This document shows positions 4,753 to 49,846 of a stretch of DNA of 49,846 nt, in pieces (within the stretch, counting starts at the first letter, position 1; each line of letters opens with the position of its first letter). The notes beneath the pieces were generated by a model that saw nothing but the letters and a program-made list of their open reading frames with translations, ran no database searches and was not told where the DNA came from. This DNA comes from Girardia tigrina (taxonomy: Eukaryota). A program made the position numbers and the translations under genes. The stretch lies in the NCBI GenBank assembly GCA_001938485.1, contig MQRK01229401.1:11579-61424 (forward strand). Reading direction: 5' to 3'.

Positions 4753-5956
4753 TTAGGTGTATAACTTAGTTTTTTGGATTTTTTTGCAGTACAGACAAGT
4801 TTATTTATATGACATAATAAGTTTTATTCTAATCAAAATATTTTCCATCGTTAATTATGACTTTCGACCATCTTTCAAGCAAATTATGAATTCCATCGAA
4901 AAAAAAGTTTTGATCTTTTGATGCGATCCATTGTTCCAGCCATTTTTTATATGTTCCTGGTTTCTGAAGTGCTGGTCCCGGAGAGCGCTTTGCATTGATC
5001 GGAACAGATGATAATCTGATGGGGTACAATCTGGTGAATAGGCAGCATGCGGTAGAATTTCCCACTTAAGTGCTTCCAACGTGTTTTTTACTTGTTTTGC
5101 GACATGTGGCCGAGCATTGTCATGGAGCAAAATCACTGTGCGCTGTTTGTTGGCTGGAATAGGACGTTTTTCCTTCAATGCATCNNNNNNNNNNNNNNNN
5201 NNNNNNNNNNNNNNNNNNNNNNNNNNNNNNNNNNNNNNNNNNNNNNNNNNNNNNNNNNNNNNNNNNNNNNNNNNNNNNNNNNNNNNNNNNNNNNNNNNNN
5301 NNNNNNNNNNNNNNNNNNNNNNNNNNNNNNNNNNNNNNNNNNNNNNNNNNNNNNNNNNNNNNNNNNNNNNNNNNNNNNNNNNNNNNNNNNNNNNNNNNNN
5401 NNNNNNNNNNNNNNNNNNNNNNNNNNNNNNNNNNNNNNNNNNNNNNNNNNNNNNNNNNNNNNNNNNNNNNNNNNNNNNNNNNNNNNNNNNNNNNNNNNNN
5501 NNNNNNNNNNNNNNNNNNNNNNNNNNNNNNNNNNNNNNNNNNNNNNNNNNNNNNNNNNNNNNNNNNNNNNNNNNNNNNNNNNNNNNNNNNNNNNNNNNNN
5601 NNNNNNNNNNNNNNNNNNNNNNNNNNNNNNNNNNNNNNNNNNNNNNNNNNNNNNNNNNNNNNNNNNNNNNNNNNNNNNNNNNNNNNNNNNNNNNNNNNNN
5701 NNNGTCTGCAGCTTTTTTCTTTTGATTAAAGCAAAACAGTAGTGCTTCCCGCAAATGCTGTTTTGTTAGTATGAAAGTTGTCATGCTAAAACGTGATTAA
5801 AAATATGTTTATGACGCATTTAGGGTCAATGACCTCCTTAATTTTAATGCCTCGATTTCAGCACTTTAAAATCTGTAAGTAGGACTGTAAAATAATGCTT
5901 ATTACAAAGGTTACACCATCTCTTGGAAAATCAAAAAAACTAAGTTATACACCTAA
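4753..5956 (-). mobile_element. Mariner transposon, Mos1/mauritiana-like, with both TIRs and TA target duplication
   Basis: TIR TTAGGTGTATAACTTAGTTTTT at 4753 and its reverse complement ending at 5956; TA at 4751-52 and 5957-58; centre is an N gap. Confidence 0.92.
4829..5784 (-). pseudogene. Mariner DD34D transposase with a frameshift near 4945
   Basis: MTTFILTKQHLREALLFCFNQKKKAA, LLHDNARPH and HAAYSPDCTPSDYHLFRSM in one frame; WLEQWIASKDQNFFFDGIHNLLERWSKVIINDGKYFD* in another. Confidence 0.88.
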
Positions 5957-7830: not shown

Positions 7831-8289
7831 TCAATTTTCAAGTTTTTATTAATCCAAAAAAATGTTCTAATAATCTTTATTTAAACAAATTTAATCGAAA
7901 TTATATTCATTCTTTTTAACTTTGTGAAACTATTTGTTTTGTGAATCTCAAGTCGCTATAATAAAAACAGATATAGTATTAATAATTCATTTAACTTTTC
8001 TTTAATTTCCGACGATTAAATAATTTCATTTTCTTTTAATAAACCTCTGAAATTTTATCATACTTAATATAAACTTTATTTAGTTCTTGATTTTTTTTAA
8101 ATTTATGATTCTATTTTTACTTCAAAATTTTTAAAATATTTTCTTAAAATTCCTAACAGTCGCTAAAGAACAATCGAGTGACATGTTGTTCATTTTCACA
8201 TTTCTTTAAAGAATGTCTCAGAAATATTCACCAAGAAGTTTAAAAAAGCGTCTAAATGATTATCTGTTATGACATATTTCCTATGATTA

Positions 8290-8760
8290 TGATTAGATAA
8301 ATGTAATGCCTGGGCAATTTCGCGAGTTGTTATTCGCTGGTTTGAATCAATTAACGCCTTTATTATGTCTTCGTCGGCCTCAATGGGCCTTCCGGAACGT
8401 GAAGAATCTTCAACACCAAAATTTCCGCATCTAAATTTTTTAAACCAGTTTTGGCATTGGCTTTCTGTCAACACATCTTCTCCATACACTTCGCATAATT
8501 TTCTTCTTGCTTGTACAGCATTTTTACCTTTTCGAAGTAAAAAAAGTAATACATGCCGTAAATGCTGATTCTTGCTTTCCATCTTTGATAGGTCAAAAAT
8601 AAAATATAAATGTTTTTAATTATTCCAAAATTTTCCAAATCTAACTTTGATTACCAACTGTTAAAATAAATAATATAGTCAATGATTATTAATGATTATT
8701 AATATAAAAAATACATTTAAAACAAGTATTAAAAAAAAAATGACTTTCAGAACAACCGAA
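8290..8760 (-). mobile_element. 5' fragment of a mellifera-subfamily-like mariner (TIR plus N-terminal HTH domains), truncated
   Basis: ORF 8582: MESKNQHLRHVLLFLLRKGKNAVQARRKLCEVYGEDVLTESQCQNWFKKFRCGNF...RSGRP...TTREIA; TIR-like TTCGGTTGTTCTGAAAGTCATT next to TA at 8761-62. Confidence 0.85.
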
Positions 8761-11498: not shown

Positions 11499-11808
11499 CT
11501 TTAAATGCTTTGACAGACCAGTTATTATGAAGAATTGGTAAGGTTGCATTCATTTGCTTACAGGAATCATATGCTATTTCCCAAGTCACAAAAACCGAAG
11601 AGTGATTTTGGTAATAAATTCTATAGAAACAAGAATCTTTTTTTGTTTTATTAAAATCCGCCTTTGGTTTTCTTTCGAAGCCTGAAATGACCATGGTTTA
11701 TTAGGTAAAGTTAACAATAGAACTTTACAAACATTTCTTATAAAAGTTCCCATTGTAAATCATGTAAATAATTATTATAAAAGAAATGCGCAACAATGAT
11801 TTAGACAT
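11499..11808 (-). CDS. 5' exons of a C-type lectin-domain gene (exons 11808-11733, 11681-11499); downstream exons to ~10930 look degenerate
   Basis: MSKSLLRISFIIIIYMIYNGNFYKK-CFERKPKADFNKTKKDSCFYRIYYQNHSSVFVTWEIAYDSCKQMNATLPILHN: hydrophobic N-terminus, CTLD W-x-x-A-x-x-x-C...L motif, 51-bp phase-1 GT-AG intron. Confidence 0.65.
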
Positions 11809-19186: not shown

Positions 19187-22100
19187 TTAAAACTGTTTTT
19201 TACGAGTTTTCACTTCAGAAAATAATTTTATTGTCTCATCAAAGTTAATATTTCGTGCTGTTGTGTTTTCAATTGATATAATTGCTAAGCTATTAAGTCT
19301 TGTTTGATTCATTGTCGAACGAAGATAACTTTTAATTAGCTTTAACTTTGAAAAGCTTGTTTTGCAAAAAGAAATTGAAACGCACACTGTCAAAAAAATC
19401 TTTAAAGCTAAATTTAAGTTTGGAACCGATTCCTGTAAATCTATTTCTATTATAAAAGTTAGCATTTTCAGTGCAGACCATTTGTTAGCTTCCTCTATTT
19501 CAACTTTTCCTGCTGGAAGATGACTTTTAATTTCAGGTAAAATTTCATTTTCTTGTATTTCATCAAAAGTTTCCGTGAGACTTGAAATCAGCATTGGAAG
19601 TTCTTCAATCTCTGTTCCAATAAGATGCGATAATTGAACGGTTGCAAACTTTACATATAAATTTTGCATTGACTCTATCCTTTTTTTAAGATCTTGATAA
19701 AATTATCAAGTGACTGAAACATCGACCTTCTCAATTCTTGCTTTAATGTTAAAGCTGCATCTTTTAACTCTTCTCCATGTATCGCCTTTTTACGACTTTT
19801 TCGGTTAACAAATTAAAACTGTTTTTACGAGTTTTCACTTCAGAAAATGAAAAGTAAGAGGATGAAATCCCAAAATCGATTCTCTTACCTCTACCTTGAC
19901 TCTCTTCCAAAAAAAAGTTATCAGGCATCTAATTTTTGTACAGTTTTGTCAAAACTAATTCCTTCGGTTTGTAAGTATTTTTGAGTATGATTGATTTCCT
20001 CAAGAGTACTACTCCAGAAATGAAGATAAGCAAGAAAACTGGAAAAATAAATGTTTTTCATTAAAATTTCAGCTGTACCCCTCGTATCTAGATTTTCTGA
20101 TGTATCGCATAATTTTTCTAAAGCCTGTATCAACTTTCGAAAATATTTCACCACAGGTTTCACAGCATTATATTGTTCGCTCCAACTGGTTCCTGGTAAC
20201 CTTTTGATAGTTATCCCGACTATTTCTAACAATATATCCCACCTATGAGTTGATGAAGAAAAAAGTTGTAAATGCTTTCAATTGTTCCAAAAAACGTTAC
20301 ACAATATGGAATGCTTCCAAATGCATGAATCCTGCTCAAGTTAAGCGAATGATTAGAACATGGTACAAATAAAACTTTCTTATTAATTTGCTGGATTCTG
20401 GCCTGTACTCCAGAGTGAATACCTAATATAACCGAAACATTGTCATAACCTTGACTTCGACATAGGTTTATATCCAAACCCTCTTCATTAATGACATTTA
20501 CAATTTGTTGTGTGATATCAACAGCTTTCTTTCCAGTAAGAGGATGAAATCCCAAAAACGATTCTCTTACCTCTACCTTTTTGTTTTCAATATGAACATA
20601 TCTAATAATCTCTCATCATTGGTCTTGGTGAGATGCATCAGGTGTTGAATCAAACATTTTCCCATAATATTTTGCTTTTTTACATCTTCAATAATCTTCT
20701 GCTTCACCGCATCTCCCAATATAGAAATAAAATCATTTTGAATTTTAGGGGAATGATGCGAAATCATGTTTCCTGCTTTACTATTCTGGATCCTTGCCAA
20801 ATGTTCTTTTAAGACAGGATCGTAGTGTGAAATTATTTCAACTAACTCTAAAAAATTGCCTTTATTCTCAGAAAATTCATGTTCTCTGTGACCACGGAAA
20901 GCTAAATTTTGTTTAGCTAGAAACATGGTGACATCTAATAAGCGATGTAAAATGTCATTCCATTTTTTAGTTTCTAGTTCCCGATTTTTTTGATGTACAG
21001 CATCAATAGTTTTATTAAGATTTAATCTTAATTCTAACGTTTTCCATGTCTCAAGATTGTTTAAGTCAATCTCAGAAATTTCATGATGTGATATCTTAAG
21101 GTTTAATTTCCACTAGTTAGAAAATCCAGTAACAAAACTTGATTCATTATTACTTTTCTTGTCACAAACTGCAAAAAGCCGACAACAGAAGCAAAATAAA
21201 CATTTCTTGGATAGAGAATAAACCATTCATTTTCTGAGAACTTTTTTACCATTTGAAAGATTTTTGTAGAACCAATGCTTAGTAAACTGTCGAGTTTGAC
21301 CCTTTATTTGTTTTCCTACTCTTTGAACCACTCCAAATGGACCATCTTTGTTTTTTATTTTTTTTTATTCGAAAAAAATATTTTAAAAAAATTTATAAAT
21401 TTCTATAGTTTTTGTTTTTCTAGTCTTCAAAAGTTATAATAAAAGGACATCAAAACAAATTATTATCAAACTGCATAAACAATAAAAAATTTTAAAAAAT
21501 ATTTACAAAACGTTTTTGAAAATACTCAGAAAAAAAATTAAAGTATGCTAGTAAAAAGATTACCATTAAAAGCTCGGATAAATGTAATGGCTGAGAAAGA
21601 GGAATGTCAACATCGATATCATCAGCTCGAAGTGATGTATTCAGGATATCTTTCATAACTGTGTTAATGAGAGAAATGTTTGAAATGATTTTGTTATTTT
21701 CTCTTATTATTATGCATACTTCTACATGCAAATGTGGAATATTGTGCTGTTGATGAAATTCTATTTGGAATCAATTTAAATGTTTTGTTCTGATTTTAAA
21801 GAAAAATTTTAATCAACAGACAACAATTTATCAATATGCACGATTCTGGAATGTATTTGAAATGTTTTTACATTCAAATTAACTTAAATTAAATGTATTA
21901 ACTTAATGTATTGATATTTTAGGTACGTTTGTGAATAAACTGGAGAAATCAAATGAGACCATTTGATAGTGAAATTGGATAATCTGATAATGGAATTATC
22001 CAATTTCCCACATCAAAATTTAAAAATTGAATATCATTTTCATTGGATAGACTGATTCCATCTGCTTGTAGCATTTTTCTACCTAATTTTTCATTTTGCA

Positions 22101-22374: not shown

Positions 22375-23067
22375 GATGCGGTATCTAAAATTAAAATTAA
22401 AAACTTATTATAATGTTCCGCTGAACGTGTTAAATCAAATAAATAATTCATCTTTTCTTCGTCCGCTAAACCATCGTATACCACAAATTCTCCTTTTGTC
22501 AAAAAAGCGGCAATATGGCTTCTAATTATAAAATCAAAATTATAAATCAACTCGTACTTTTCCTGCCTTAATTAATATAAATTTCCTGTCTAGAAATAAA
22601 TATAAACAGAATTGAACAACTAAAAAAGTATATTTGTTTCAACACAAAGTTTGCCTCACAAAATCCAAAAGTTGCTAAAATTTTCGTTTCCGAGTACATT
22701 CAAATAACATATTTTAAAATTAAGTGTCTTTTTATTCATCACAAAATTTACTTTATACTTTTCAATTGAGGATCTATTTATTTTGATAGTGAAATTGAAT
22801 GATTTTTTGTGAAGTTAATTTTACTATTTATAATATACTATTTTGGCCGGTCATTTTTAAAAATTAGTCCTGTTTAAGATGGTCACAAATACTAAATTTT
22901 ATTTATTTTTATCAAAATTAACTGTTAACTCCAAATCTAAAACAATTCAAAATAAGAAGTATCTTTTACTAATAATTTATATTTACTATATTATAAAAAT
23001 ATTAAAATTACTCTAAAAAAGTGTTTGTGATTTTCAATTCAAGTATTACAATGATATTTATTAAATA

Positions 23068-23466
23068 CTAGCGCGCTCGGCCCGCTTCGCGGCCCTCTCT
23101 TGCCGGGGGTTCAATTTTTTTTATATTATAAAAGCCCAAGTCACTCACTGCCTGCCTCACTGCCTCACTAATGCTATAAGGTAAATTTTTGAAATAATAA
23201 CAGAATTTTTCATAATAAATTGATATTTTTCCACATTAAATACAGAATTTTTCATAATAAATTGATNNNNNNNNNNNNNNNNNNNNNNNNNNNNNNNNNN
23301 NNNNNNNNNNNNNNNNNNNNNNNNNNNNNNNNNNNNNNNNNNNNNNNNNNAAATTGATATTTTTTCACATTTATTTTTCAACAAATAATACTATTATTAC
23401 ATCAACAATTATTACGTCAGCGTTAGTGAAGCAGGCAGTGAGTGACTTGGGCTTTTATAATATAGA
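23068..23466 (-). mobile_element. Non-autonomous Helitron with an internal inverted copy of its 5' end
   Basis: 5' TCTATATTATAAAAG, 3' GC hairpin GGCCGCGAAGCGGGCC then CTAG; inserted in A|T with no TSD; empty site CGATAA|TATTTAAT present in copy B at ~41399-41412. Confidence 0.9.
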
Positions 23467-23844
23467 TTATCGTTAAATGTTATTATAAAAAAAGTAATAA
23501 TTTTTTATATAAAAGTAGTGTTGAAAATTAAACAAATGAGAGGAAAGCAAAATGATTATTAACTTTTGTAAGGTATGACTGCAATTACAAGGACATTAAA
23601 AAACTTTTATATTTTTTATTAATTTATTCCACAAGATTCTCATTGAAAGTCTGTGAGTGTCCTTTTAATATATGTTAAAATTATTCATAGAGATCTTTTC
23701 TAACATTAGAAGTTACAGTTCAAGTTACGACTGTTGGCGATTGATGACAAACACAAAGTAGAGGGAAATTCCACGGTGAACTGCATTTCTCTATAATATT
23801 GTTTTTCAATATAAATTTAGTATTTTCGTTATTCCTAACAATCA

Positions 23845-24786
23845 TTATTTCAATTTATAAATCATAATATATGCTGTTTTACTTGGTGTTTCCAAAACAG
23901 CTTTTTTATCCGTCAAACTACATTTTTCGTCATCCATCTCGATCCAACGGCTGTATTTTGTGAAACATTGTGATATATAATGACCGGAGGTTGTCCTCAA
24001 TCCTCGATGATGAACGACTGCAACAACATCGAATTGACGAAATTGTTCTGTACTCGTCTCCACAGAAAGACTTTCTTCTATGTGATGAGCTGAACTGTTC
24101 TTTTCTATCTTCATGAGATTAATATTCGTTTCGAATCTCATCAATGTACAAATTAAATATTTCGGAATTCGAATTAGTTTGAAATATTTTGTAGCATATG
24201 TTGTTCGTTTACAATGTTCACAATTAAAACAATCAATTGATTCTTTTTCAAACACGACTTTCGAATCCAATTGTATAAATGTCGTCAATTCTTCATGTTC
24301 CTGAACTGTTTCACTGTTTGCTTGGTGACATTCTTCACAAATATATCGGTTGTCGTATGAGAATTTGTATAATAATCTGATGGGATTATTCTTGCCCGAG
24401 AACGGTTTATAACGGTCGAATTCTTCTTCCAAACGAGATAATAATCCTACAAGGAATTCTTGTGCATCTTGCATTTGATATTGAGAAAAACTTGGAGAAT
24501 AATATTTGATATCGGTAATTGCTTTTCTTAAATTCCATGAAGGTTTGTTGTCTTTCAAAGTATCTAATAATTCGTTCATCAAATAACATGCTGGAACTTC
24601 TTCTTTCTCTTTGAAAATATTTCTCATGACCCTCACTTTGATGATTAATTTTGATTCAAGTGTAACAATCAAAGCTTGCATAACAGAATTCATGTAACAA
24701 CTAACGGAACTGTTGATCAACCCTATAGAAGATTTGTAAGGGGTCATATCAAATTTAGATTCTAAATCATCCCATATTAAATTCAT
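23845..24786 (-). CDS. Ubiquitin-specific protease (peptidase C19), minimal intronless catalytic domain, 313 aa, copy A
   Basis: Cys box GLINSSVSCYMNSVMQAL (C30), QDAQEFL, CxxC...CxxC zinc ribbon, His box VVHHRGLRTTSGHYIS (H269), WIEMDD (D285/286). Confidence 0.93.
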   Translation of the reverse strand: MNLIWDDLESKFDMTPYKSSIGLINSSVSCYMNSVMQALIVTLESKLIIKVRVMRNIFKEKEEVPACYLMNELLDTLKDNKPSWNLRKAITDIKYYSPSFSQYQMQDAQEFLVGLLSRLEEEFDRYKPFSGKNNPIRLLYKFSYDNRYICEECHQANSETVQEHEELTTFIQLDSKVVFEKESIDCFNCEHCKRTTYATKYFKLIRIPKYLICTLMRFETNINLMKIEKNSSAHHIEESLSVETSTEQFRQFDVVAVVHHRGLRTTSGHYISQCFTKYSRWIEMDDEKCSLTDKKAVLETPSKTAYIMIYKLK

Positions 24787-25695
24787 TGTTTATTATTAAT
24801 TGCTTTTTGTTTTATAATATTTTCTTTTTTCATTTATAATACGGTAAAAAATTATTTATAAATTTTATTTTCTAATGAAATAATTGGATAAAATGTTTTA
24901 TTTGATTATAAAAATCATTGTTTTTAAAGTAAATATTTCTTTATGAACTCAATTTTGAGTTTTGAGTTTTTGTGTTCTTCATAAATATGTTTATTGTTGT
25001 TAATAAAATAAAAGTTTTTATCGGAAAACAACCACAAACCCAACGAACGTAATTCAAAATAATGTGAATTTAAAAGTTATTTCATGATCATTTATGCGAG
25101 AGAAAATTCTGAATTTGGTTATATGCTGTTTGGATTGGTGATTCTCAATTCAGATGGGATTGAGATGTTATTGAATAATTATTTAAATCTAATGAGATTA
25201 ATTTAATGAGCTTAATGTTTAAATATTAATTAATTAAAAGTTTTCTAATTATAAATTTTATTAATATTGTTTAGTAAAACGATTTTAACTTTATGAGGAA
25301 TATTTGGTGTGTTGATGTTTTTGTGTAATGTTTGCGTGTTTAAAATGTGTTGTGTCGATTTGGGATTGTGCCTCTCCTAATCAGATTTATTCTAATCAGA
25401 TTTATTCTAACACAAATTTACAAACAAAGTTAAGTACTTTAAATAAAATTTTTTTTGTATATATATATATACTGATAAATGTTATAAATATTTATTTTTA
25501 CCAATATGCTACAATATGATATATTTCAAAGTGTATAAATATATGATCCCTGTGTGGATTCGACAATAATTAATAAATTACCTATTTTAAAATTTTTGTA
25601 TATTAGCATTTTATCTTTTTGGAGCCCCCCTTCATCAGAGGCCTGGGGCGGTCCGCCCCAACCGCAACCCCCCCCCCCNCCTCAGTACGCCACTG

Positions 25696-34517: not shown

Positions 34518-34806
34518 AAAATAAATATTTAATACAATTATCAACCTTTTCATAATTTCTTCTAAAATAAATACTAAACATGAAATTTTAATAATTTAAA
34601 TTCATTTATAAATTGCAAATATGAGTTTAATTGAAGGTAGTTTTGAAACCTGTCAGACCGGATTTACGAGAATCTCTTGACTTTTGGAAAATAATTATAC
34701 ATTCTTTAAAAAAACTGACAATTTTAGTTCAACAAGAAATGTTATACAATTTGGCAAAACTAAAACAAGTTTTATATTTAATTAATTGAGAAAAAAATTA
34801 TTTTTT

Positions 34807-34955
34807 TTATTTTCCGTAACCGGAATACCACGATTGTTCGTTAAAGGGGTTTCTCTTCTTTCCATAACCAGAAAACCAGGCTTGGTCCGCCCATCTTTGG
34901 GTATTTTTATCTGAGAATCTTTTTACGGCGAGGTACAACTTCCTATCATTGAAAT
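34807..34955 (-). CDS. Neuropeptide precursor, exon 2 (two amidated W-[FY]-S-G-Y peptides)
   Basis: Acceptor TTTTTTTAG at 34956; (D)FNDRKLYLAVKR-FSDKNTQRWADQAWFSGY-G-KKR-NPFNEQSWYSGY-G-K*; repeated peptide with Gly amide donors and basic cleavage sites. Confidence 0.85.
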
Positions 34956-36359
34956 CTAAAAAAATAATTACATTTTTGGTGAAAAATATTTTAATAAATA
35001 GATTCTGAATAGATTCAGAATATAATTTAATTTGTATATTTTTATGCATAAATTACTTCATTTGAAATCTTTCATAAAACAATTATAACATCACCTACAC
35101 GTATACTAAAAAGGTTTAGAAATTAGTACTTGATCTAATAGATTCTTTGACTTCTCTTTAAAATTCGTCTGAAATGTTTGTTTCTTAATAAGAAGATTGC
35201 ATAATTATTACTCGGAATATCAAAGATTTCCTATACAACACACAAAAAGCATTTATATTGGAAACCCACAAACGGGTCTCTCCTGTTTTGTCAAACGGTT
35301 ATAAAGCAGTTCATTTAGGAGGCTTTAATTTGTTGGATATCTGATATTCCAGAATCTGTCGTTTAAACCTAACAACAACAGATAGGAAATGATTTTACTT
35401 ATGGATTTTAATTCCACTGAATTTAGAAGCATGTTAGGTTACTCAAGGTAAAGATAAAAATTTTATTCAAAACCAAAAATGAAGGACAAAAAAACATTTA
35501 TGGTTGTTTTCACAAGTATTACGAAAATATGATCATGTCTTCCTAATTTTGTCATTTCAGGAAATTATGAAATGCTTTTCAAATGTTTTTTGGTTTTAAA
35601 AGCCTTGCATACCAAGTCCCTTACTCAATCAATAAGTGTTTGGTAATAAATATTTTAAGAATAAATATAAGCTCGGCTCACTAAGCCATCTAAAGACCAA
35701 TGAATGAAAAATTAATGAAACCATTCAAAATGTTAACGACAAAGCATAAATAGCTTATAATATTTGGTCTGATCAATCTTTAATCGTATGAAAGTATAAA
35801 AGGTTAGTTGGTTAATATATTGGCTACAAGTTTTCCATTTATGAAGACTGTTTTAAAGTTATAAACTTTGTGAACAAGAGCTCATAGAATAAAGCAGAAT
35901 ATGAATAAGAATTAAATATTCATGTTTTTTAGAGTATTAAGATTCTGATTTTTAAAACTATAAGTTGTACATCAATAATTAATCAATAAAAATCAGATAA
36001 TGTACATACAATGGGAGCGGTTTTAATTGCATAATCCTGAAAATTCATATATAATATCATTTTCCTGGTCAATGTGTTGTAAAAATGATTAAGTTGATGT
36101 GTCTACTTGCAGTATACATTAATCAAGCAACTCAATTATAAAGGGTGCGAAATAACATCATAATTCTACTTTTAGTTTTTTTCTAAGAATTCCAAATATT
36201 GACATTATCATGGACTTCGTTGTATCTCAGCAGAGGGTTTTTTGGTATTCATTATTGACAATTCTTTTCCTGAAATTTTTCTGATCTTAGGGTGATTGAT
36301 TCATCACCAGTTGCAACAAATGATGAGGATTTAATAAACGAAACAACACAGGTTTTCTG

Positions 36360-36959
36360 TCATAAATGGATTTGAAAGTTAAATAAGCAACAGAATCGTG
36401 AAAAGACGATTAGAGAAGATGTCGATATTGATTTTACACCCGCGGTTGTTGAATTATTATCATTTTTAGCAGATGGTGGAAGAATTTGGTTTGTGCTCAA
36501 AAGAATCAAATTAAGAATAGTTCTCAATATCTCACAAACTAATTGACAATGCATACGTTCCATTTTAGTTCCGCAAACGTAATAAATTTCGACCGATTTA
36601 TCAACTCGTATGTCCATATAACGCATCACATCTAACACTGATTTAAAAAGAGCAATTGATCGAGTTATTTCGTCAAGATGTTTTTTATTTGCTTTTAATT
36701 CAGCAATATAACAATTATAACATTTTGGAATTAATTCAACATTATTTTTGGAATTTTTATTCAATTCCGAAAATTGATCAATACGCTCCGCCGATTTCAA
36801 ACGACTGATTTCGTCTGTTAAAAGAATTTCATCGATATTCAATGATTTATGTTCCGCGTATTTGATCATTTCGACAAATACATATGCATATGACGTTAAA
36901 TTAGTTTCTCCGCGTAAGTTTGCCAAATTCCTTTCAAAAGGTTGCCAAGATTTTGCCAT
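36360..36959 (-). CDS. 199-aa chimeric ORF: TRAPPC5/Trs31-like N-terminal ~45 aa fused to unrelated sequence; may be a non-functional chimera
   Basis: FERNLANLRGETNLTSYAYVFVEMIKYAEHKSLNIDEI resembles the TRAPPC5 N-terminus (LERALARPRTEVSLSAFALLFSELVQ, from memory); similarity stops at an acceptor-like TTCTTTTAACAG. Confidence 0.45.
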   Translation of the reverse strand: MAKSWQPFERNLANLRGETNLTSYAYVFVEMIKYAEHKSLNIDEILLTDEISRLKSAERIDQFSELNKNSKNNVELIPKCYNCYIAELKANKKHLDEITRSIALFKSVLDVMRYMDIRVDKSVEIYYVCGTKMERMHCQLVCEILRTILNLILLSTNQILPPSAKNDNNSTTAGVKSISTSSLIVFSRFCCLFNFQIHL

Positions 36960-37346
36960 TTAAAATTTGATTATAATTAAATGGAATAATTCAAAATCAA
37001 AAGGCAATTTAAACTTTTTCCAAACTTTATTTATCTTAAATTAATCGATTTAATTGTAATTTGTAATTATTTTCAAAAATTGTTTTATGATACAGTTTTG
37101 TTACAAAAATAATATTCACACAGAAAACATTACACACACGCATGTACGAATCAGAATTAACAAAAACATACATATCACACTTTATTAACAATCTCACCCC
37201 TCACACACCAAAAACACATTCAATGCAAATATTGATGTGAAATCAATTCAATTGTTTTTAAAAAAAAGATATTTTCCACTTTTTACAAATGATTCAAGTG
37301 CCACAAATTAAAAATTGATTGATTAACAAAGTGCCATTGATAATAA

Positions 37347-37381
<35 letters not shown>

Positions 37382-37559
37382 TTTAATTTATTTGTTTAAA
37401 TTACTTTTAATTATTTTATTTAATTGATATTTTAATTTAATTGCTTTTTTTACATTTATTTTTAACTGAATACTGTATTTAATTTTTTAATTTCTTTTAC
37501 TTATTTCATTTAATTTTACTTAATTTTATTTATCTAATATTTTAATTTAAATTGGACTC

Positions 37560-38380
37560 AAGTAAGGGTAATCACAACGCGAACAGACTTGACTGCTATA
37601 CAGCGTACGCAGAAAGTTACTTTGGTTACCCACACATCCCAAACACAAGTGGAAATTGCTGCAAATGTAGGGTTCTCCCAATTTGCAGTGCCCTGTCTGC
37701 TTAAACAACATCAACAGACTGGGAGCATTGCAATTCAGAAGAAAGGTCAGTGTGGAAGAAAGAAGCTCATTGGAGAGCAAATTTCAAATCGCATCATCAT
37801 ACACAGCAAGATGGATCAGAAAATGACATCAGTGGAAATGAAAGAAAGAATTGGCGAGCCTGCATCAAATGTGTCAGCACATCGAATCAGAGAGCATTTA
37901 TAACATGCAGGAAATTGTTAGCAATAAAACTTTTTCATCTAGACTGTCTTCTCTCAATTGTAAAACATGGTGTGGATTATGAGATGATCTGTTGTGTGAC
38001 TTCTTGGATATCCACAGACCAATAATTTGTATTTATGGAAGAATCAACATTTTAAATTCGACTTTTTAAGAGTTTTGGGCGACCAATTTTACCCTATGTT
38101 CCTAGAACACAATTTTTCCAGAATTTCACGAGCAAAATTCTGATGAACTTGAGCATCTCATCTGGACACTTTATTCCCTAGATATCAACATTATTATGCA
38201 GTTATTATCGATTTTAAAAGTTTAAGTAAAACGTTAATTTCCAATGCCATCTTATCTTAAAGGATGTTTTAACTAAAAAAGGGTTAAAATTCATTTTGAA
38301 ATAATTCTCAATTTGTATAGGTCAATATTTCAGAAAATGGAGGCTGTAATTGTCGCAAAAGGTAAACCTACACTAAATTT
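37560..38380 (+). mobile_element. Degenerate Tc1-like transposase remnant
   Basis: HTH with TQVEIAANVGFSQ...TGS...CGRKK; C-terminal MEAVIVAKGKPT at ~38337-38375. Confidence 0.75.
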
Positions 38381-39863
38381 AAATGTATTTTTTATTATTA
38401 TTTTATCCATTCCCTACATTGGAATAATGTAAAATTAATTTTTGTAATTGTGGATAATAATTAAATTATGATTATTTTTTGACTTTTTGATAATTCACTT
38501 ATATAGGTTAGTTTTTATCCAGTCAACTTTGCTGTTTGATTATTTCGCAAAGATGTTGGGAACTCTTTCCAACTAAAAGTATAATTATAAACAAGATCAG
38601 AACCTAAAACGAGAGGTATTGAAGACTTATTGTTGAACATATTCTCAATTTTAAATTATTAGCAACATCATAATTTGAGTGAACACTTTATTTACATCAC
38701 AGAATCATTTTCAATAGAAATATCTGCGGGAAGCTTAGTTCCTGATTAATATGGTTTTTGTATCTAAATTCAAATCTTTGATTTAAATAATGAGATGAAA
38801 ATAATATTAACTTTTAATGTCTCAAAATTTTATTGTATAAAAATGGATTAAGTAAATTTAAAAAAAATAAACATTATTTTTAAAATTATATTAAATTTAG
38901 TAAGTTTGTCAAGAGAACTCACACATTTGATGGAACATTAATTACATTGACAATTTTGATCATCCCTATGACAATCAATAGTATTGCTCACAATTAAATC
39001 CATCACTCAATGTTTAATACCCATCCTTAAAATCTGAACTAACCTGAAGAAAATTATTTTATTTAACTTAAATTTAATTGTCTAAAATAAAATTACTTTT
39101 TGTAATCATTTTTAAACATTAATTGGATTTTAATTATTTAAAAATTTACAAAAATAAAACCGATAAAATTCTTTAAAAGTTACAATAATAAAAATTCAAA
39201 ATTTGAATATTAAATCTAAATTTTGAATAAATTAGTTTCAGAATATAAGAATTAAAATATTAATTATCCATCTGATTAGGAGAGGCCCAAATCGACACAA
39301 CACATTTTAAACATGCAAACACTACACAAAAACATCAACAGACCAAATATTCCTCATAAAGTTAAAATCGTTTTACTAAACAATATTAATAAAATTTATA
39401 ATTAGAAAACTTTTAATTAATTAATATTTAAACATTAAGCTCATTAAATTAATCTCATTAGATTTAAATAATTATTCATTAACATCTCAATCCCATCTGA
39501 ATTGAGAATCACCAATCCAAACAGCATATAAACAAATTCAGAATTTTCTCTCGCATAATTGATCATGAAATAACTTTTAAATTCACATTATTTTGAATTA
39601 CGTTCGTTGGGTTTGTGGTTGTTTTCCGATAAAAACTTTAATTTAATAAACAGCAATAAACATATTTATGAAGAACACAAAAACTCAAAACTCAAAATTG
39701 AGTTCATTAAAAAATATTTACTTTAAAAACAATGATTTTTATAATCAAATGAAACATTTTATCCAATTATTTCATTAGAAAATAAAATTTAAAAATAATT
39801 TTTTACCGTATTATAAATCAAAAAAGAAAATATTATAAAACAAAAAGCAATTAATAATAAACA

Positions 39864-40805
39864 ATGAATTTAATATGGGATGATTTAGAATCTAAATTTG
39901 ATATGACCCCTTACAAATCTTCTATAGGGTTGATCAACAGTTCCGTTAGTTGTTACATGAATTCTGTTATGCAAGCTTTGATTGTTACACTTGAATCAAA
40001 ATTAATCATCAAATTGAGAGTCATGAAAAAGATATTCAAAGTGAAAGAAGAAGCTCCAGCGTGTTATATGATGAACGAATTATTAGATACTTTGAAAGAC
40101 AACAAACCTTCATGGAATTTAAGAAAAGCAATTACCGATATCAAATATTATTCTCCATGTTTTTCTCAATATCAAATGCAAGATGCACAAGAATTCCTTG
40201 TAGGATTATTATCTCGTTTGGAAGAAGAATTCGACCGTTATAAACCGTTCTCGGGCAACAATAATCCCATCAGATTATTATACAAATTCTCTTACGACAA
40301 CCGATACATTTGTGAAGAATGTCATCAAGCAAACAGTGAAACAGTTCAGGAACACGAAGAATTGACGACATTTATACAATTGGATTCGAAAGTCGTGTTT
40401 GAAAAAGAATCAATTGATTGTTTTAATTGTGAACATTGTAAACGAACAACATATGCTACAAAATATTTCAAACTAATTCGAATTCCGAAATATTTAATTT
40501 GTACATTGATGAGATTCGAAACAAATATTAATCTCATGAAGATAGAAAAGAACAGTTCAGCTCATAACATAGAAGAAAGTTTTTCTGTAGAGACGAGTAC
40601 GGGACAATTTCGTCAATTCGATGTTGTTGCAGTCGTTCATCATCGAGGATCGAGGACAACCTCCGGTCATTATATATCACAATGTTTCACAAAATACAGC
40701 CGTTGGATCGAGATGGATGACGAAAAATGTAGTTTGACGGATAAAAAAGCTGTTTTGGAAACACCAAGTAAAACAGCATATATTATGATTTATAAAATGA
40801 AATAA
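39864..40805 (+). CDS. Ubiquitin-specific protease (peptidase C19), 313 aa, intronless, copy B
   Basis: Same Cys, His and Asp boxes; 13 aa differences from copy A (~96% identity). Confidence 0.93.
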   Translation: MNLIWDDLESKFDMTPYKSSIGLINSSVSCYMNSVMQALIVTLESKLIIKLRVMKKIFKVKEEAPACYMMNELLDTLKDNKPSWNLRKAITDIKYYSPCFSQYQMQDAQEFLVGLLSRLEEEFDRYKPFSGNNNPIRLLYKFSYDNRYICEECHQANSETVQEHEELTTFIQLDSKVVFEKESIDCFNCEHCKRTTYATKYFKLIRIPKYLICTLMRFETNINLMKIEKNSSAHNIEESFSVETSTGQFRQFDVVAVVHHRGSRTTSGHYISQCFTKYSRWIEMDDEKCSLTDKKAVLETPSKTAYIMIYKMK

Positions 40806-40973
40806 TGATTCTTAGGAATAACGAAAATACTAAATTTATATTGAAAAACAATATTATAGAGAAATGCAGTTCACCGTGCAATTTCCCTCTACTTTGTGTT
40901 TGTCATCAATCACCAACAGTCGTAACTTGAACTGTAACTTCTAATGTTAGAAAAAATCTCTATGAATAATTTT

Positions 40974-41372
40974 AACATACATTAAAAGGACACTCACAGA
41001 TATTCAATGAAAATCTTGTGGAATAAATTAATAAAAAATATAAAAGTTTTTTAATGTCCTTGTAATTGCAGTCATACCTTACAAAAGTTAATAATCATTT
41101 GCATTATTCCTCACATTTGTTTAATTTTCAACACTACTTTTATATAAAAATTTATTACTTTTTTTATAATAACATACATTAAAAGGACACTCACAGATTT
41201 TCAATGAGAATCTTGTGGAATAAATTAATAAAAAATATAAAAGTTTTTTAATGTCCTTGTAATTGCAGTCATACCTTACAAAAGTTAATAATCATTTGCA
41301 TTATTCCTCACATTTATTTAATTTTCAACACTACTTTTATATAAAAATTTATTACTTTTTTTATAATAACAT
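40974..41372 (+). repeat. Two tandem copies of a ~197-bp unit downstream of USP copy B
   Basis: AACATACATTAAAAGGACACTCACAGA at 40974 and 41171; single copy in cassette A. Confidence 0.9.
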
Positions 41373-41888
41373 ATTTTATAATAACACAATTTATTCCACG
41401 ATAATATTTAATAAATACCATTGTAATACTTGAATTGAAAATCACAAATACTTTTTTAGAGTTATTTTAATATTTTTATAATATAGTAAATATAAATTAT
41501 TAGTAAAAGATACTTCTTATTTTGAATTGCTTTAGATTTGGAGTTAACAGTTAATTTTGATAAAAATAAATAAAATTTAGTATTTGTGACCATCTTACAC
41601 AGGACTACTTTTTAAAAATGACCGGTCAAAATAGTACATTATAAATAGTAAAATTAACTTCACAAAATAATTCAATTTCACTATCAAAATAAATAGATCC
41701 TCAATTGAAAAGTATAAAGTAAATTTTGTGATGAATAAAAAGACACTTAATTTTAAAATATGTTATTTGAATGTACTCGAAAACGAAAATTTTAGCAACT
41801 TTTGGATTTTGTGAGGCAAACTTTGTTTTGAAACAAATATACTTTTTTAGTTGTTCAATTCTGTTTATATTTTTTCTAATAACAAGCT

Positions 41889-42395
41889 ATGTCTTCGAAA
41901 TAATGTCGATGAAGTTTTTCTAGGCAGGAAATTTATATTAATTAAGGCAGGAAAAGTACGAGTTGATGGCGCGTCATCAGAAGTTTTATAATGAGAAGCC
42001 ATATTGCCGCTCTTTTTGACAAAAGGAGAATTTGTGGTATACGATGGTTTAGCGGACGAAGAAAAGATGAATTATAAAACGTTAAAATGCGAACCACTGG
42101 ATGTGTACGCGGTAGATATTAAGAGGTTAGTTCATTTAATTGATGCCAAGACAAGCTACATGTGGATGTAAATCGCTGTTATCCGGCGGTTATCGAACTC
42201 TATCTAGCGGTAAATAAAATCAGCGTGAGTGAAACACGACCTGAAACTGTGAAATATTACTTTTATGATGCGGGCGATGGTCAAACCAGATGTATACATG
42301 AGTGGACTGACTCAAAAACGACAGTCATGCAGTGGCTCGGGAAATTCATGGTGATTTCTACCCCATGGTTCGATTCAACAATCAAATACCGGTAG
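41889..42395 (+). pseudogene. Disrupted ORF of unknown function, second gene of the USP cassette (truncated in copy A at 22443-22590)
   Basis: Reading NVDEVFLGRKFILIKAGKVRVDG...EAILPLFLTKGEFVVYDGLADEEKMNYKTLKCEPLDVYAVD..., then frameshift to ...DVNRCYPAVIELY...WFDSTIKYR*. Confidence 0.45.
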
Positions 42396-42639
42396 AATTA
42401 TTGAACCAGTAAAAAATATTAAAATTTTAAAAAATACGAAAAATAAACCATATAAATATTTAAATTAAAAAAATAGGTTTTTTTAAAATTCTATATTTCA
42501 AAAAATAAAATTCATTTTTTTCATAATTGAAAAATATTTTATGAAATATAAATAATTTATTATTTTATTAATCTTTTTAATAATTTTAGAAATGTGAGGA
42601 AACAAAAATATTTTAACATATTTTGTAAAAACAAAATAC

Positions 42640-42718
42640 CTCGTATATCTGCACCGACCGATCGATTCGTTATCATCAATGCAACAGCAAAGCAAAGAAG
42701 AGTAAAAAGCAGCTTCAT
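42640..42718 (-). CDS. Neuropeptide precursor, exon 1 (signal peptide)
   Basis: MKLLFTLLCFAVALMITNRSVGA-DIR plus G, donor GTATTT at 42639; phase 1 matches exon 2 (G|AT = Asp); acceptor TTACAG 5 nt upstream of the ATG. Confidence 0.78.
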
Positions 42719-45331
42719 TTTTCCTGTAATGTAAAACTATCTTAAATATTGATAGAGCATTTCCTGTTTCATTATCAATATCTGTAATTTAATTTTCTTA
42801 TTTTTTTAAATAATTTTTATCAGTATCGAATGCCAGATTTAATTAATTAATATTAAATAATTATTCATCATTTCATTATTTTTTAAGTTTATTTTACAGA
42901 AAACTGACACTCGAACAAATAAAGAGTCAATTGTCGTATTAATGATAGATTGCTTAAATGTTTCGAGCAAACTGCTGAGAAAAATAAATAATCAGACTCG
43001 TTTATGAGTATTTATTTTTTGGTTAAAAAATAAAAAAACAATTTGTATGTTTTTAGTCTATTAATTATTCTTTTTAAAATTTTCTCTATATCCCAAACAT
43101 CATTTTGAAAAATCAAAATTCCAGCATTCTTTTTCGGTAAAAGAGTACACGTTTTTGCAAGTCTTAGTGAAGTAAAAAGAAAATTTTGTTTGTGTTTTTT
43201 TAATTTGAACAACAATAAAATATAAAATATAATATGATAATATTATAACAATATATAAAAAATTATAAAATTAAATCATATTTTAATAAATATTATATTA
43301 TATTATATTATGTTATATTACATTATATTATAATAATTAAATAACAATTGTTTAAAATATGAAATTATAATGTTTTGTAAGTATTTTCGGATCAAATAAA
43401 TATTTATGAATTAAAAGAAAGAAAATCATAATTTTAAATTACCTTTTTAAATTATAAATAAATCATTTTAATGATTATTTAATATTTATATTATATAAAT
43501 AACATAATATAATCGAGTTACAACAAAATGATATTATAATATCATAAAAATAAATATAAATAATACGTACAATTTATCGAAAGTAAAACTTTTTGTTAAA
43601 AATTAAACTTGTTTAAAAAATTGACAAACTAAAATATATTATTTTATTAAATTAATATCATTATTTAACGATAATTACAAATAATTTTATATTTTCTTTG
43701 TATTCAATTAGTTAATTTTTGTTATTCTTAGTAAAAAATAAATTTAATTATTTGTCACAATCGTTAAAAAATGAAACTAAATAAGAACAAAATATTATTT
43801 TAAAATATTAATTTTTGTAATTTTTATTAAAAAATTTTCCGAAAAATGTTATTTTTTTGAAATTCAAATTTGAAGATAAAACTTACAATTAAATTTTCAG
43901 ATTTCTAAAAAGTTAATTTGAAAATGTTAAATTCATTAATTTATAACGGCGGTCTCTCACGTCATTGGTTGAATAATTAACTTAAATTTAAATTTTCCCG
44001 TTTTATGATTGGTTAATTGTGTCAATTATTAATCATATTTTTCTATCTTTAATTAATAAAAACTTTCCGTCCTTTTTAAATTTATATAAATAATTATATA
44101 TTATCATTTAAAATATATAATTAGTATTTGTATTGGGTAATAAATATAAATAATAATATTTGTGTAATTTTTAATCAAATTTCAAAATGATAAATAAATA
44201 AATATTTTTATATTAAAAATCTAATAATTTAAAATATTTATTACTGAATCAATATTGTTCGATGTACTCAATACAGTAAATATGTTATAATTATTAATAG
44301 GAAACACATTAAATATTAATTATAAATTTCAATTCATAAAATCATTTGTGATAAATGTGATTTTAAAGCATGAAGATTATATTATTTCAAATTTAAGAAA
44401 TATTAAAATATATAAAAATAAATATTAAATATATATTATTAGATTTTTTCAACAATTTAACAATATTTTTTAAACAAACCAATTGTGATTGTTGTTGTTC
44501 ATCTTTAGCTTTGATTACTTCAAGAGTCTTTCTTCAACTATTCCGGAAGTTTAGGACGCGTTTGATTTAGGATCGTTGTAAAACTATGGAAAGAGTAAAA
44601 TATAACTTGTAATAAACCTTAATTAAATTATTAGTTCATCACGGTAAAAAAAATTTTATTTCGTTTTGTTAAAAAAAATTAATTTGAGATTTACCAAAAT
44701 TTTAACAAAATTTTATAATTTATTTTTGAATTTCATAAATTATTCTTTTTAGAAAAAATAAAAGTTATTTTTTTTTAAATTTTGATAATACATAATAATT
44801 TCAAAAAGGTGAGAGAAAAAATACAAAAAAATCATGAATTATTTATTTTTTAAAGAATATTTATAAGATTTGCTTTTTTAAGTCCCTTTTGTCTAATTTA
44901 AAAAGAATTTATAAAATAATGAAATTTATATTTCTAAAAATCATATTTAATATTTTTATTTATTTGCACTTTTTTCGAGACTAATTTTTCACAAAACATT
45001 CATGTATAAAATTAAAATAAATTTTCAATCTTATATTATTTTTGTTTTTGTTATATTTTTTATTCTTCTATTTGCTCTTTTATCATTTTGTTTTTTGAGA
45101 CAATTTTTAAATTAAATTATAATAATACTATAATATTGTATATTATATTATTAATTTATATTATTAATTATATTATATTGATAAAATATTAAACATATTA
45201 TTTTTAAAATTAATTTAAAATTAAGAATAATAATCATTTAAATGTTAATAATACATTTGAAATGAAATTTATAAGAACTAATATTACTTGACTGTTATAA
45301 ATTATTATTTTATTATTAGATTAAATGATAT

Positions 45332-45560
45332 TTATTCTGTTAATTTATAAATCAAAATATATGCTGTTTTACTTGATGTTTCTAATACCCATGTTTTATC
45401 CGTCAAACTACAATTTTCGTCATCCATCTCGATCCAACGGCTGTATTTTGTGAAACATTGTGATATATAATGACCGGAGGTTGTCCGCGATCCTCCATGA
45501 TGAACGACTGCAACAACATCGAATTGACGAAATTGTCCCGTACTCGTCTCTACAGAAAAG
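45332..45560 (-). pseudogene. Third USP copy, C-terminal fragment only (His box, no Cys box)
   Basis: FSVETSTGQFRQFDVVAVVHHGGSRTTSGHYISQCFTKYSRWIEMDDENCSL...; shares F240, G247 and S263 with copy B. Confidence 0.88.
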
Positions 45561-47729
45561 TATACCTGAAATTGATTTTTGTTGAAAAATGGGTACCTAT
45601 TAAATGCTTTATTTAAACATTTTAAAATTTTATTAAACAATTATAATTTTTATTATAAGATATTTCACTCAAAATTTTCAATCGAAAAGCTTTTCAAATT
45701 TGGAAAAAGGAAACACTAGCTAGTAAACTTTGTAATGAAATACTAATATATTCTTTTCCAAACATTTCCGTTATATACATATTTTTAATTGAAATAATTT
45801 TGATGTTTACAAATTTGATAATTAATGAATTTTTACGCAATAAATGTAAATTATATCTGAGCTAAGTTATAGAAAACCTGGAAATGGAGTTGGTTTGTAC
45901 TTATAGAATTTTTATGTTATTTTAGTCAAAAAAGTTAATTTATTAAAAAAGGAATTCGTGTTTTATTTTTTATTTAATACATATTAAATCCGCAAAATGT
46001 TGTATCTCTCAATAAACATTGAAAGATTTAAAACGTGTGACGATGAAAAGTGTAGAAATATGAAAATTGGAAACATACATAAATATCAGTAAAGGTTCGA
46101 AAATTCTCGAGGGCAAACATTAGAAATGAAGAAATCCGATGAAGTTTACTGTAATTATTATAAAGGAGTTCAGATGACGAAATAAAAAAAAGATTTTATT
46201 CTTTAAATAAAATAGTTATAATTATCAACAATCTTATGACGAAAGGACAAACGAAGAGTAATAGTAATATCACAATGCAAGGGAAAGAGATCGAGAAGAA
46301 CAACAAAATAAAAGAACTATAATACGTTAATATAGATATTATTCCAAAAATACTGCATAAATAAATGAATTAATGAATGAAGGGAAAGAAGGGAATGTTG
46401 ATTGAATTTGAACTGGAATGATTGGAAACTTAGATATTGAATAAGAGAGTGCGCGACACAAATAAATTCGAATGAATTTTTACAACTATCTTTTTTGCTT
46501 AATTAAATTATCTAAACTGTCATTAAAACTGGATTTCGATAATTTGGTTTCATTTGTTGAATTGACTTTGAGTTTTTGTGTTCTTATTGAAAATTGAGAC
46601 AATTCAATATTGCAAGAAGCTTTAATTATTCGACCAAAATATACCCGCAAAACAAAGTTTTTTAATAGAAGCAAGGTTAGAAACTCGACACTCATCCAGC
46701 CAGTAGTCGTCATCAAGCCGAATCGTTCTATGGATTCGACAATAAAAAAGACACCATTCATTTGCCATTTAAAGTTAATTTTGAATCAAATTCTTGATGT
46801 TTATGCTACATTCTTCATTAGCCAATTTTTCATGAATGATTTTTCAAAGGTATATTCTAGAACTGCCAAAAAAACATCGATTTTAACAGTGTCCATTGAT
46901 TTTTCGATTTAAAAATTTATTTAGACCGGTACTGCATTTTCAAGATGATAAACGTAAAACAGAAGAGGCATCTATTTTGTTTGATGAAGAACATTGTGAA
47001 GGTTCAAGTGAGATTTTGATGGAAAATCTGTGGTCTATCTAAATGTGTCTATCTATTTAGTCGTGCCAATGAAGAAAATAAATATTCTCTAAAACAGATA
47101 TTGCAGAATCAGAGGATTTACTAAAAGTCAGATGTCAGATTAAGAAGTTTAGTATAAATGTTTTAGAATTAGTGATAGTACTAGATTAAGTGAGCTGAAG
47201 TACAATCGAACTGTGAATATAAGGATCATTAAACGGTAAATTTAGCATTATTTTATCACAGTCTGGCGAAGATTGTTTTGGGAAAATGCTGTATATGGTC
47301 ATTAGGAAATCTTTTGATGGCATAGATGCGAAGACTAAATTCGGAATTAGGTGAAAGAATTAATGCTAATTTAAACTGAAAAGTTAGACTGACAAAGCTA
47401 TAATCAAGGCTGAATAAATTAAAATTTAATATATTTTTTATGAAATTAATAACAAACATTAATAAAGGATTGAAACAGAAGTATAAAGAGATTCATATTT
47501 TACAGAAATTCAATGTTAAAGCTTTTGGTATATATTCCCCATTTAAAATACTTTCTGGGCCAAAACGTTTTAAATTCTCTGAACTCAATTAAAGAATTAT
47601 TAGGAGAGAATAACATATGAATGTTACGGTTCAAAGAAGAAAAAGTTAGCAAAAACACACCCAAATTAGCAAAAAACACAGATTCGATAAAATACATATA
47701 TTCAAAAACATAAAGAAAAAAAAATGTAT

Positions 47730-49846
47730 ATATAAGGGAACGGTCGTCTTCTGATACGTCACCAGGATCCTTGTGGTGCCCCGTCCTAGCACCCAGAAAA
47801 GAGTTGACGACCCTAACAAAGGATAATTAATTAAAAAAATCCGATAAAAATAAATAAATCACCTGTAGGGCAATCCGTTGGACCTTCGGGGCCAGCCGAC
47901 CCTTCAGCGGAAGGTCCTGACGAAATCTGTAATTGGAGGACACCCACGAGTTCGTAGCAGGACCAGGAGCAAAGATATAACCCTGTAAAATAGAAAGAAA
48001 TTAATTAATAAGTACAAAGAAATTAATTAATAACTCACATGATCTAGGCCTCAATCTAAAAATAGCGCGGTGGCCTCATATGACCGCACACCGATTTCTG
48101 ACGTCGATGTATGTAAATCGACACACAGTCGCCAAATCCTATAGTAAAAAACAAAAATATCAAAAATTGCAAAAATCTAAATGACCTACATATTTGACCA
48201 TCCAATCGAAGAACTGGAAGAACCAGACGGCCCCGATCATTGGAGGAGTTTGGAGTCGGCGTGTCATCCTGTAAGTATAAAAGAAATAGTTAAAAAACGC
48301 AAATCGCAAAAAAAAACAAAATAAAAAACAACAACAACAAAGAAAAAGAAATTGAAATTGAAGCCCACGAAAACACAAATACGAAACAACAACGACAACT
48401 CAAAAACAAGAACACAAACACACGACATTAGAAAATCAAGAGCGCAACGCGAAAACCCGAAGTTTAAACGATCGACAATCATTTTACTCTCGACCGCAGG
48501 ATTTCAAAAAATGTAAAGGAAAAATTTTATTTTATTTGCTGTTATAATTGGATATTAATAATAATATTTTCTAACATTTTATTTGGTTTCATTTATTTAC
48601 TTTAAGCGTTTACTTTTATGATATTATATCTAATTTTTATTTACTTATTTTAAACATTTATCGGCTCAATTTAAAGTAAGGGAGTCACCTTAAGTTCCGT
48701 CGTCGTCCACCGTCATCCTCGTCATGGCAGAATCATTAGGAGGCACAGGCGCGCCGTCCGAGAATAGCGACGCCCCGTCGCTCGAGATCATCGAGGTGCG
48801 CTCCATCTCGATGTCAGNNNNNNNNNNNNNNNNNNNNNNNNNNNNNNNNNNNNNNNNNNNNNNNNNNNNNNNAACGACATTACCGAGGGATTGTATAGAA
48901 TCGACCTCGTTTAATGGACTACGTTGTTGAATGTGTACAGTTATGTTTAGATTGTATTAGTGTATTCAAACAAATGAGATAGGATATTGATTTATATCTA
49001 ATAAAAAATTTTTTCTTTAGAACGTTACTGGTTATCTTATTTTGACCGAATTCTAATAGTGATTTTAAATTTTTCTGAGTTAATTTTACGATATTTTATT
49101 TTTAAGTTGCGTTTTAATAACTTTTATAATTTCGGGATATTGAACGGTGAATTTTAGAATTCAGAATTAATTTAGAGGTATTTTCGTAATTAACTGAGAT
49201 TTGATAGTTTAGGACGAATTTCACGATTTATTCAGAGAGTAATTTCCTGATGAAATTCCATTAATTACATGTTGGATTTCGATTTTGAAGTTATAGTTTT
49301 AAACAGATATTTAATTGATTGCAAATCTATTTCACCGAATTTAAATTGTTAATTTTATTAATTTGAGTCAAACGAATTATAGATAAAATGATATTATAAG
49401 TTTTGTCGAATTAAAGTTAGAATTCTGCTCCTCCTGTAGAAACAATTTCCCTCTGAAGTCCGTTCTATAATTACGATTAATATATCTCGAACAATCGTTT
49501 ATTTTGATACTAACTTTGAAGGGAAAAGCAAAATTAGCGCAGTGAATTTCGAAAGATTTACCAATAAATAGTTTTATTATAAAGATGAAAATGGGCCAGC
49601 GGGAGCCTAAGAGTTTAGCAAATTGCGAATCCATACGGGTTAAAATTTGAAGTAAATTGAGTTATATAGGCAGGGGAGTAGGGTACGCAGAGCTGTTGTC
49701 GAGTATGGGTCTCCTGGAGTTATAATGCTCATTAATAGTGACTTTTTATGATATACTTTTCCTAGTTATGTAACAACACCCACAGTGCCACAAGTTAGTA
49801 AAGATACAACATACAAACGCAATAAGTCGCATTCAAACACAACAAT
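47730..49846. other. Copy 2 of the unidentified ~2-kb module (runs off the window end)
   Basis: Minus introns 47983-48038 and 47813-47862 around a 120-bp exon; plus ORF 48724 with LEIIEVRSISMS; CACAGTGCCACAAGT at 49781. Confidence 0.5.

Follow-up and report, generated by a model that had tools for sequence, protein, structure and literature searches.

An npp-8 neuropeptide gene in the planarian Girardia tigrina and a possible link to molluscan W-x3-Y-amide peptides

A two-exon neuropeptide gene and its transcript

We analysed a stretch of 49,846 nt from the genome of Girardia tigrina (hereafter the window; positions 11,579 to 61,424 of contig MQRK01229401.1, assembly GCA_001938485.1), which has a GC content of approximately 25% and lies in an assembly of 1.43 Gb and 255,254 contigs. 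Its minus strand carries a real, spliced and expressed neuropeptide gene of two exons, to which all coordinates in this section refer. Exon A (42640..42723) comprises a few nucleotides of 5′ untranslated region (UTR), the ATG at 42718, codons 1–26 and the first base of codon 27, so that 79 nt (42718 to 42640) are coding before a phase-1 GT donor. An acceptor-like AG just upstream suggests 42723 as its upper bound. The encoded N-terminus is strongly hydrophobic (Kyte-Doolittle values over nine residues of 2.0–3.0 across residues 1–17), and a signal peptide is predicted for residues ~1–23 (42650..42718) from this hydropathy and from a gapless alignment to the published 23-residue signal of Schmidtea mediterranea Smed-npp-8. 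A GT-AG intron of 7684 nt (34956..42639), delimited by the sequence and by contig data and carrying inserted repeated DNA, leads to exon B (34750..34955). Here a T-rich tract and an AG acceptor precede 34955, the open frame (34955–34807) ends in a TAA at 34809–34807, and the 3′ UTR extends to a poly(A) site at ~34750, 27 nt ahead of which stands ATTAAA (34777..34782), a candidate poly(A) signal. The phases agree (1/1), giving a precursor of 26 + 1 + 48 = 75 residues. Each exon is present as a single copy in a genome-wide search.

Glycine followed by basic residues is the mark of convertase cleavage, carboxypeptidase trimming and amidation from the C-terminal Gly. Exon B contains two such arrangements. 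A dibasic KR site (34918..34923), also present in Smed-NPP-8, precedes peptide 1 (34864..34917), whose 18 residues end in DQAWFSGY-amide, aligning with Smed DQVWHSGY, and are followed by GKKR (34863–34852). Peptide 2 (34816..34851), predicted as the 12-residue NPFNEQSWYSGY-amide, ends in EQSWYSGY, aligns with Smed GQAWYSGY-GR and is followed by GK and the stop codon (34815–34807). Across its six reading frames the window has two matches to the pattern Q.W..GYG[KR], and none was seen in any of 30 shuffles. Predicted [M+H]+ values are 2206.01 for the 18-residue peptide 1, 1229.54 for a 10-residue form of it and 1490.63 for peptide 2.

Part of exon B is present in 16 public sequencing runs. Contigs of four of these, from four studies with four organism labels, were aligned against 34560–35700. 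In every run they cover 34750–34957 only, with zero coverage of the intron stretch 34989–35700, and at 34957 they pass into an identical 30 letters whose unique match in the window, with 0 mismatches, is 42642–42671, the 3′ end of exon A. The two overlapping bases (34956–57) are AG, which is found on either side of the junction. Moreover, run X1 shows a poly(A) tail of 23 nt at 34750, a position at which only three A stand in the genome. The gene is therefore transcribed, spliced at 42640/34955 and polyadenylated. Protein comparisons were made per exon, and the join itself comes from the contig ends and the exon offsets given below. A hidden middle exon is ruled out, as the contigs join exon A straight to exon B and the Smed register has no gaps. 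Chance or artefact is likewise ruled out by junction contigs in four studies and the absence of motif matches in shuffles. Unspliced read-through of exon A would give merely a stub of 36 or more residues, with no peptides.

The original prediction, made from the letters of the window alone, had placed the 79-nt signal-peptide exon with its phase-1 donor, and the phase-1 exon 7.7 kb downstream, at the positions at which we find them. It had only inferred that the two are joined; this is now seen in transcript-like contigs across 42640/34955. Its proposal of a two-exon, 75-residue neuropeptide prohormone agrees with the KR/GKKR/GK layout and with colinearity with Smed-NPP-8, and the W-[F/Y]-S-G-Y-amide peptides that it named remain predicted from Gly and basic residues, with a core common to the Smed-NPP-8 peptides.

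Two contigs reach ~96 nt 5′ of the junction, ~12 nt more than separate the junction from the acceptor-like AG that precedes 42723, so that transcription begins ahead of the ATG. At 43966–43881 (minus strand), ~1.2 kb upstream of exon A, CCAAT, a CRE-like TGACGT and TATAAA are clustered, with a GTAAGT donor at 43886, ~55 nt later. This is a candidate promoter with a short 5′ UTR exon, for which the AG preceding 42723 would be a possible acceptor. In the 3′ UTR, an A-run at 34801 is one base shorter in the contigs of two runs than in the assembly, a non-coding difference that may be an allele or an assembly slip.

Relationship to Smed-npp-8

Searched exhaustively with HMMER, 1.84 billion proteins yielded three matches to exon B, one of which is a small protein matched over its full length (P0002; E 1.2e-12, 60% identity) and named 'neuropeptide precursor 8 [Schmidtea mediterranea]'. 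A word-indexed protein search with exon B had returned no match, and Pfam holds no family for exon B or for Smed-NPP-8. In gapless comparison with P0002, exon A aligns best at offset 0, with 9/26 residues identical (4 at the next best offset), and the best offset for exon B is 27, where 19 of its first 32 residues are identical (59%). These offsets are the register that the splice demands, and therefore support both the join and colinearity from Met1. Identity also reaches outside the peptides, into the signal and a DRKL.LA.KR spacer, which argues for homology of the precursors and not for convergence of a motif alone. Both precursors (Smed-NPP-8: GU295189, ADC84443.1, E3T7V1) share the KR site, and the window peptides end, as NPP-8 requires, in Q-x-W-[HYF]-S-G-Y followed by Gly and basic residues, with the final copy at the extreme C-terminus. 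They differ in length (75 residues in the window gene, 93 in Smed) and in WFSGY where Smed has WHSGY.

In a profile search of the genome, the window gene was the family member closest to Smed-npp-8, and one further npp-8-like member was recovered, in two copies that are 95–96% identical and probably alleles. Their terminal exons lie at G000:C213782:2186-2359 (plus strand; L005:1429-1677) and G000:C226727:11826-12002 (minus strand; L004). They encode peptides ending in QAWFSSY-GKR and HQMWDSGF-GK-stop, and their precursor is 26% identical to Smed-NPP-8. On sequence grounds this is a paralogue of the npp-8 family, and its low identity points to the window locus as the orthologue. Peptides of this type are absent from the supplement to Collins et al. 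2010 (PMC2953531). Two other loci (L006 and L007, E 7.7) were rejected as family members.

Taken together, these data indicate that the window gene is almost certainly the orthologue of S. mediterranea npp-8 in another planarian, and that it most likely acts as an ordinary amidated-peptide prohormone. Several points weigh against this. Two copies of the peptide precede the stop and poly(A) in the window gene, versus three in Smed, although we regard copy number as a trait of the Smed gene and not of the family. Peptide 1 has KN where Smed has KK, a cleavage site inside peptide 1. No peptide in the supplementary entry for Smed-NPP-8 is in bold (PMC2953531), which apparently denotes confirmation by mass spectrometry (MS), and npp-8 is not mentioned in a 2016 planarian MS-imaging paper. 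Processing and amidation in planarians are therefore predicted. Lastly, the runs used above are only presumed to be RNA, although contigs that are spliced and polyadenylated make them RNA in practice.

The difference in copy number, together with the presence of at least one other family member in the same genome and the fragmentation of the assembly (255,254 contigs), could be read to mean that the window gene is a two-copy within-planarian paralogue of npp-8, the true orthologue being missing from the assembly or missed. We regard this as very improbable, given that exon B is 59% identical over its first 32 residues, that colinearity from Met1 is gapless and that the profile search found no closer locus. 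Still less credible is an undescribed signalling system, as had been suggested in the original prediction. The lack of a Pfam family and the empty word-indexed search speak for it, as do motif searches of main-text literature, which gave noise only, the match sitting in a supplement. However, a named orthologue exists in UniRef/nr and was the subject of cloning and in situ hybridisation in 2010. The same prediction had set a match to a described family as the result that would refute novelty, and the protein and literature searches placed the peptides in npp-8. The gene itself is thus not new, its family having been described in 2009–2010.

According to Table 1 of PMC2953531, npp-8 was predicted by McVeigh et al. 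2009. Collins et al. 2010 cloned Smed-npp-8 by 3′ RACE (GU295189), list DQVWHSGY-amide and QAWYSGY-amide as its peptides in their supplement and report in situ signal in the lateral cephalic ganglia, the nerve cords, the tip of the pharynx, the intestine and lateral sub-epidermal cells (PMC2953531). A planarian intestine atlas does not mention npp-8, and the literature that we searched yielded no NPP-8 receptor or functional study.

Following standard prohormone biology, the signal peptide would send the 75-residue precursor to dense-core vesicles and be cut near residue 23. A PC2-type convertase would cleave at KR and KKR, carboxypeptidase E would remove the basic residues and PHM/PAL would convert the C-terminal Gly to an amide. 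The predicted products are an acidic/basic spacer and two peptides that share the core aromatic-x-x-Q-x-W-[FY]-S-G-Y-NH2. For peptide 1 this would yield the 18-residue form originally proposed. The alternative 10-residue WADQAWFSGY-amide is uncertain because it needs a cut at a single Arg that is absent from peptide 2 and is followed by Trp; this internal Arg is conserved ahead of two Smed copies. By analogy with Smed expression, the peptides may be released from neurons, and possibly gut cells, to act as a brain-gut neuromodulator on an orphan class A G-protein-coupled receptor. The same expression pattern leads us to guess that chemosensory or feeding circuits would be the most plausible target.

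Molluscan relatives and the wider family

By motif, we take the window peptides to be distinct from the RFamide, MIP/Wamide, kinin and GnRH/AKH types. Peptides of the buccalin/allatostatin A type carry a C-terminal L-amide, as (F/Y)-x-x-G-L-amide, and this family is ruled out for the window gene, whose peptides end in G-Y-amide. The remaining two HMMER matches to exon B are limpet precursors, Lottia LOTGIDRAFT_170020 and Patella caerulea SNE40_006638 (E 2e-26 and 4.5e-10), which carry 14 and 6 copies of HQAWF[SA]GY-GKR, respectively. Their core, QAWFSGY-G-KR, is identical to that of window peptide 1, whereas the precursors are 286–612 residues long with 6–14 tandem copies, have His ahead of Gln and are annotated as hypothetical proteins. 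A mollusc dataset (PMC6425005) gives the Lottia precursor the label 'buccalin-like', which does not fit its Y-amide end as read from the sequence.

A search with Smed-NPP-8 recovered a further protein (P0006, E 0.035) on a metagenome contig (L008:3001-3423), in which the NPP-8-type DQAWYSGY and SQVWFSGY stand beside QQGWHVNY and QQGWYNPY. A relative that is 64% identical to it comes from the snail Gigantopelta aegis and has QQAWHVNY and QQAWHTSY, suggesting that the source animal of P0006 was a gastropod; Pfam holds no family for the Gigantopelta precursor. The QQ copies of both resemble an oyster peptide confirmed by MS, pQQGWHIAY-amide, of which QQGWHIAY-amide is the scallop counterpart. Such molluscan Wx3Yamide peptides are known from Crassostrea, Pinctada and Patinopecten (PMC4200219, PMC5996578), and no function or receptor for them is reported in the literature searched. 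The window peptides fit the W-x-x-x-Y-amide pattern that gives these peptides their name, and share with them GKR sites and, mostly, a Gln two residues ahead of Trp. Bivalve Wx3Yamide copies differ in having I/M-A/S/T before Tyr instead of S-G and in being 8–9 residues long, in longer precursors with no alignable spacer.

A further reading, compatible with the orthology, is that NPP-8 represents molluscan Wx3Yamide in flatworms, both belonging to a single lophotrochozoan W-x3-Y-amide family that shares a receptor. We lean towards this reading, with some reserve. Gln at −7, Trp at −5, the Y-amide and GKR are common to all, limpet precursors repeat HQAWF[SA]GY-G-KR 6–14 times, and the mixing of NPP-8-type and Wx3Yamide-like copies in P0006, with QQAWHVNY and QQAWHTSY in its Gigantopelta relative, makes a single family likely. 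Against this, just 8-residue motifs are held in common, nothing aligns outside the peptides and short motifs can converge. Moreover, P0006 is from a metagenome contig and only presumed to be gastropod, the Lottia precursor bears a published 'buccalin-like' label, and the text of Thiel et al. 2021, with its nemertean, brachiopod and phoronid supplements, gave no family match. The link between NPP-8 and Wx3Yamide was not found stated in the literature searched, key papers lying outside that search.

The window gene alone adds little, being one more npp-8 orthologue that shows a conserved aromatic residue at −10, Gln at −7, Trp at −5 and S-G-Y-amide. What value remains lies in the unlisted paralogue and in an orphan peptide family that probably links flatworms and molluscs. 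We tentatively hypothesise, at somewhat less than even confidence, that NPP-8, bivalve Wx3Yamide and the HQAWF[SA]GY-amide precursors of limpets may form one unrecognised lophotrochozoan orphan family, in which Q-x-W-x3-Y-amide would be the conserved core and the receptor is still to be discovered; planarians would have a second, apparently unlisted paralogue. If NPP-8 and Wx3Yamide are one family, planarians, in which RNA interference and whole-mount in situ hybridisation are routine, offer a direct route to the function and receptor of a peptide that is an orphan in both phyla.

Repeats and other features of the window

The intron of the npp-8 gene contains a USP-encoding segment of repeated DNA (~39270–42075). 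Within it lies an intronless open reading frame (ORF) for a 313-residue ubiquitin C-terminal hydrolase (39864–40805, plus strand; Pfam UCH, E 2e-34). This ORF is part of a 2.8-kb segment that recurs as an inverted repeat at ~22443–25386 (97% and 89% identical), with a second ORF at 23845–24786 (minus strand), and a third, partial copy is found upstream of the npp-8 gene at 45332–45640 (minus strand). Genome-wide there are four near-identical full copies and ~60 distant intronless relatives. Judged by sequence, the unit resembles a USP cassette that is mobile or has been amplified. A Pfam search also identified a transposon-like fragment, possibly Tc1-like, in the intron (37589–37903), and mariner (Mos1 HTH) and hAT (DUF4371, dimerisation domain) transposase remnants, in which this genome is rich, elsewhere in the window (4855–5784, 8196–8582 and 19187–20926). 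An ORF of 199 residues within the intron, on the same strand as the gene (36360–36959, minus strand), has no Pfam match. Lastly, at 47750–48290 (minus strand) several short blocks of higher GC content, with AG and GT at their borders, interrupt a pyrimidine-rich background, adjoined by a GC-rich stretch at a gap near 48800; these blocks resemble exons, either of another spliced gene or of a repeat element.

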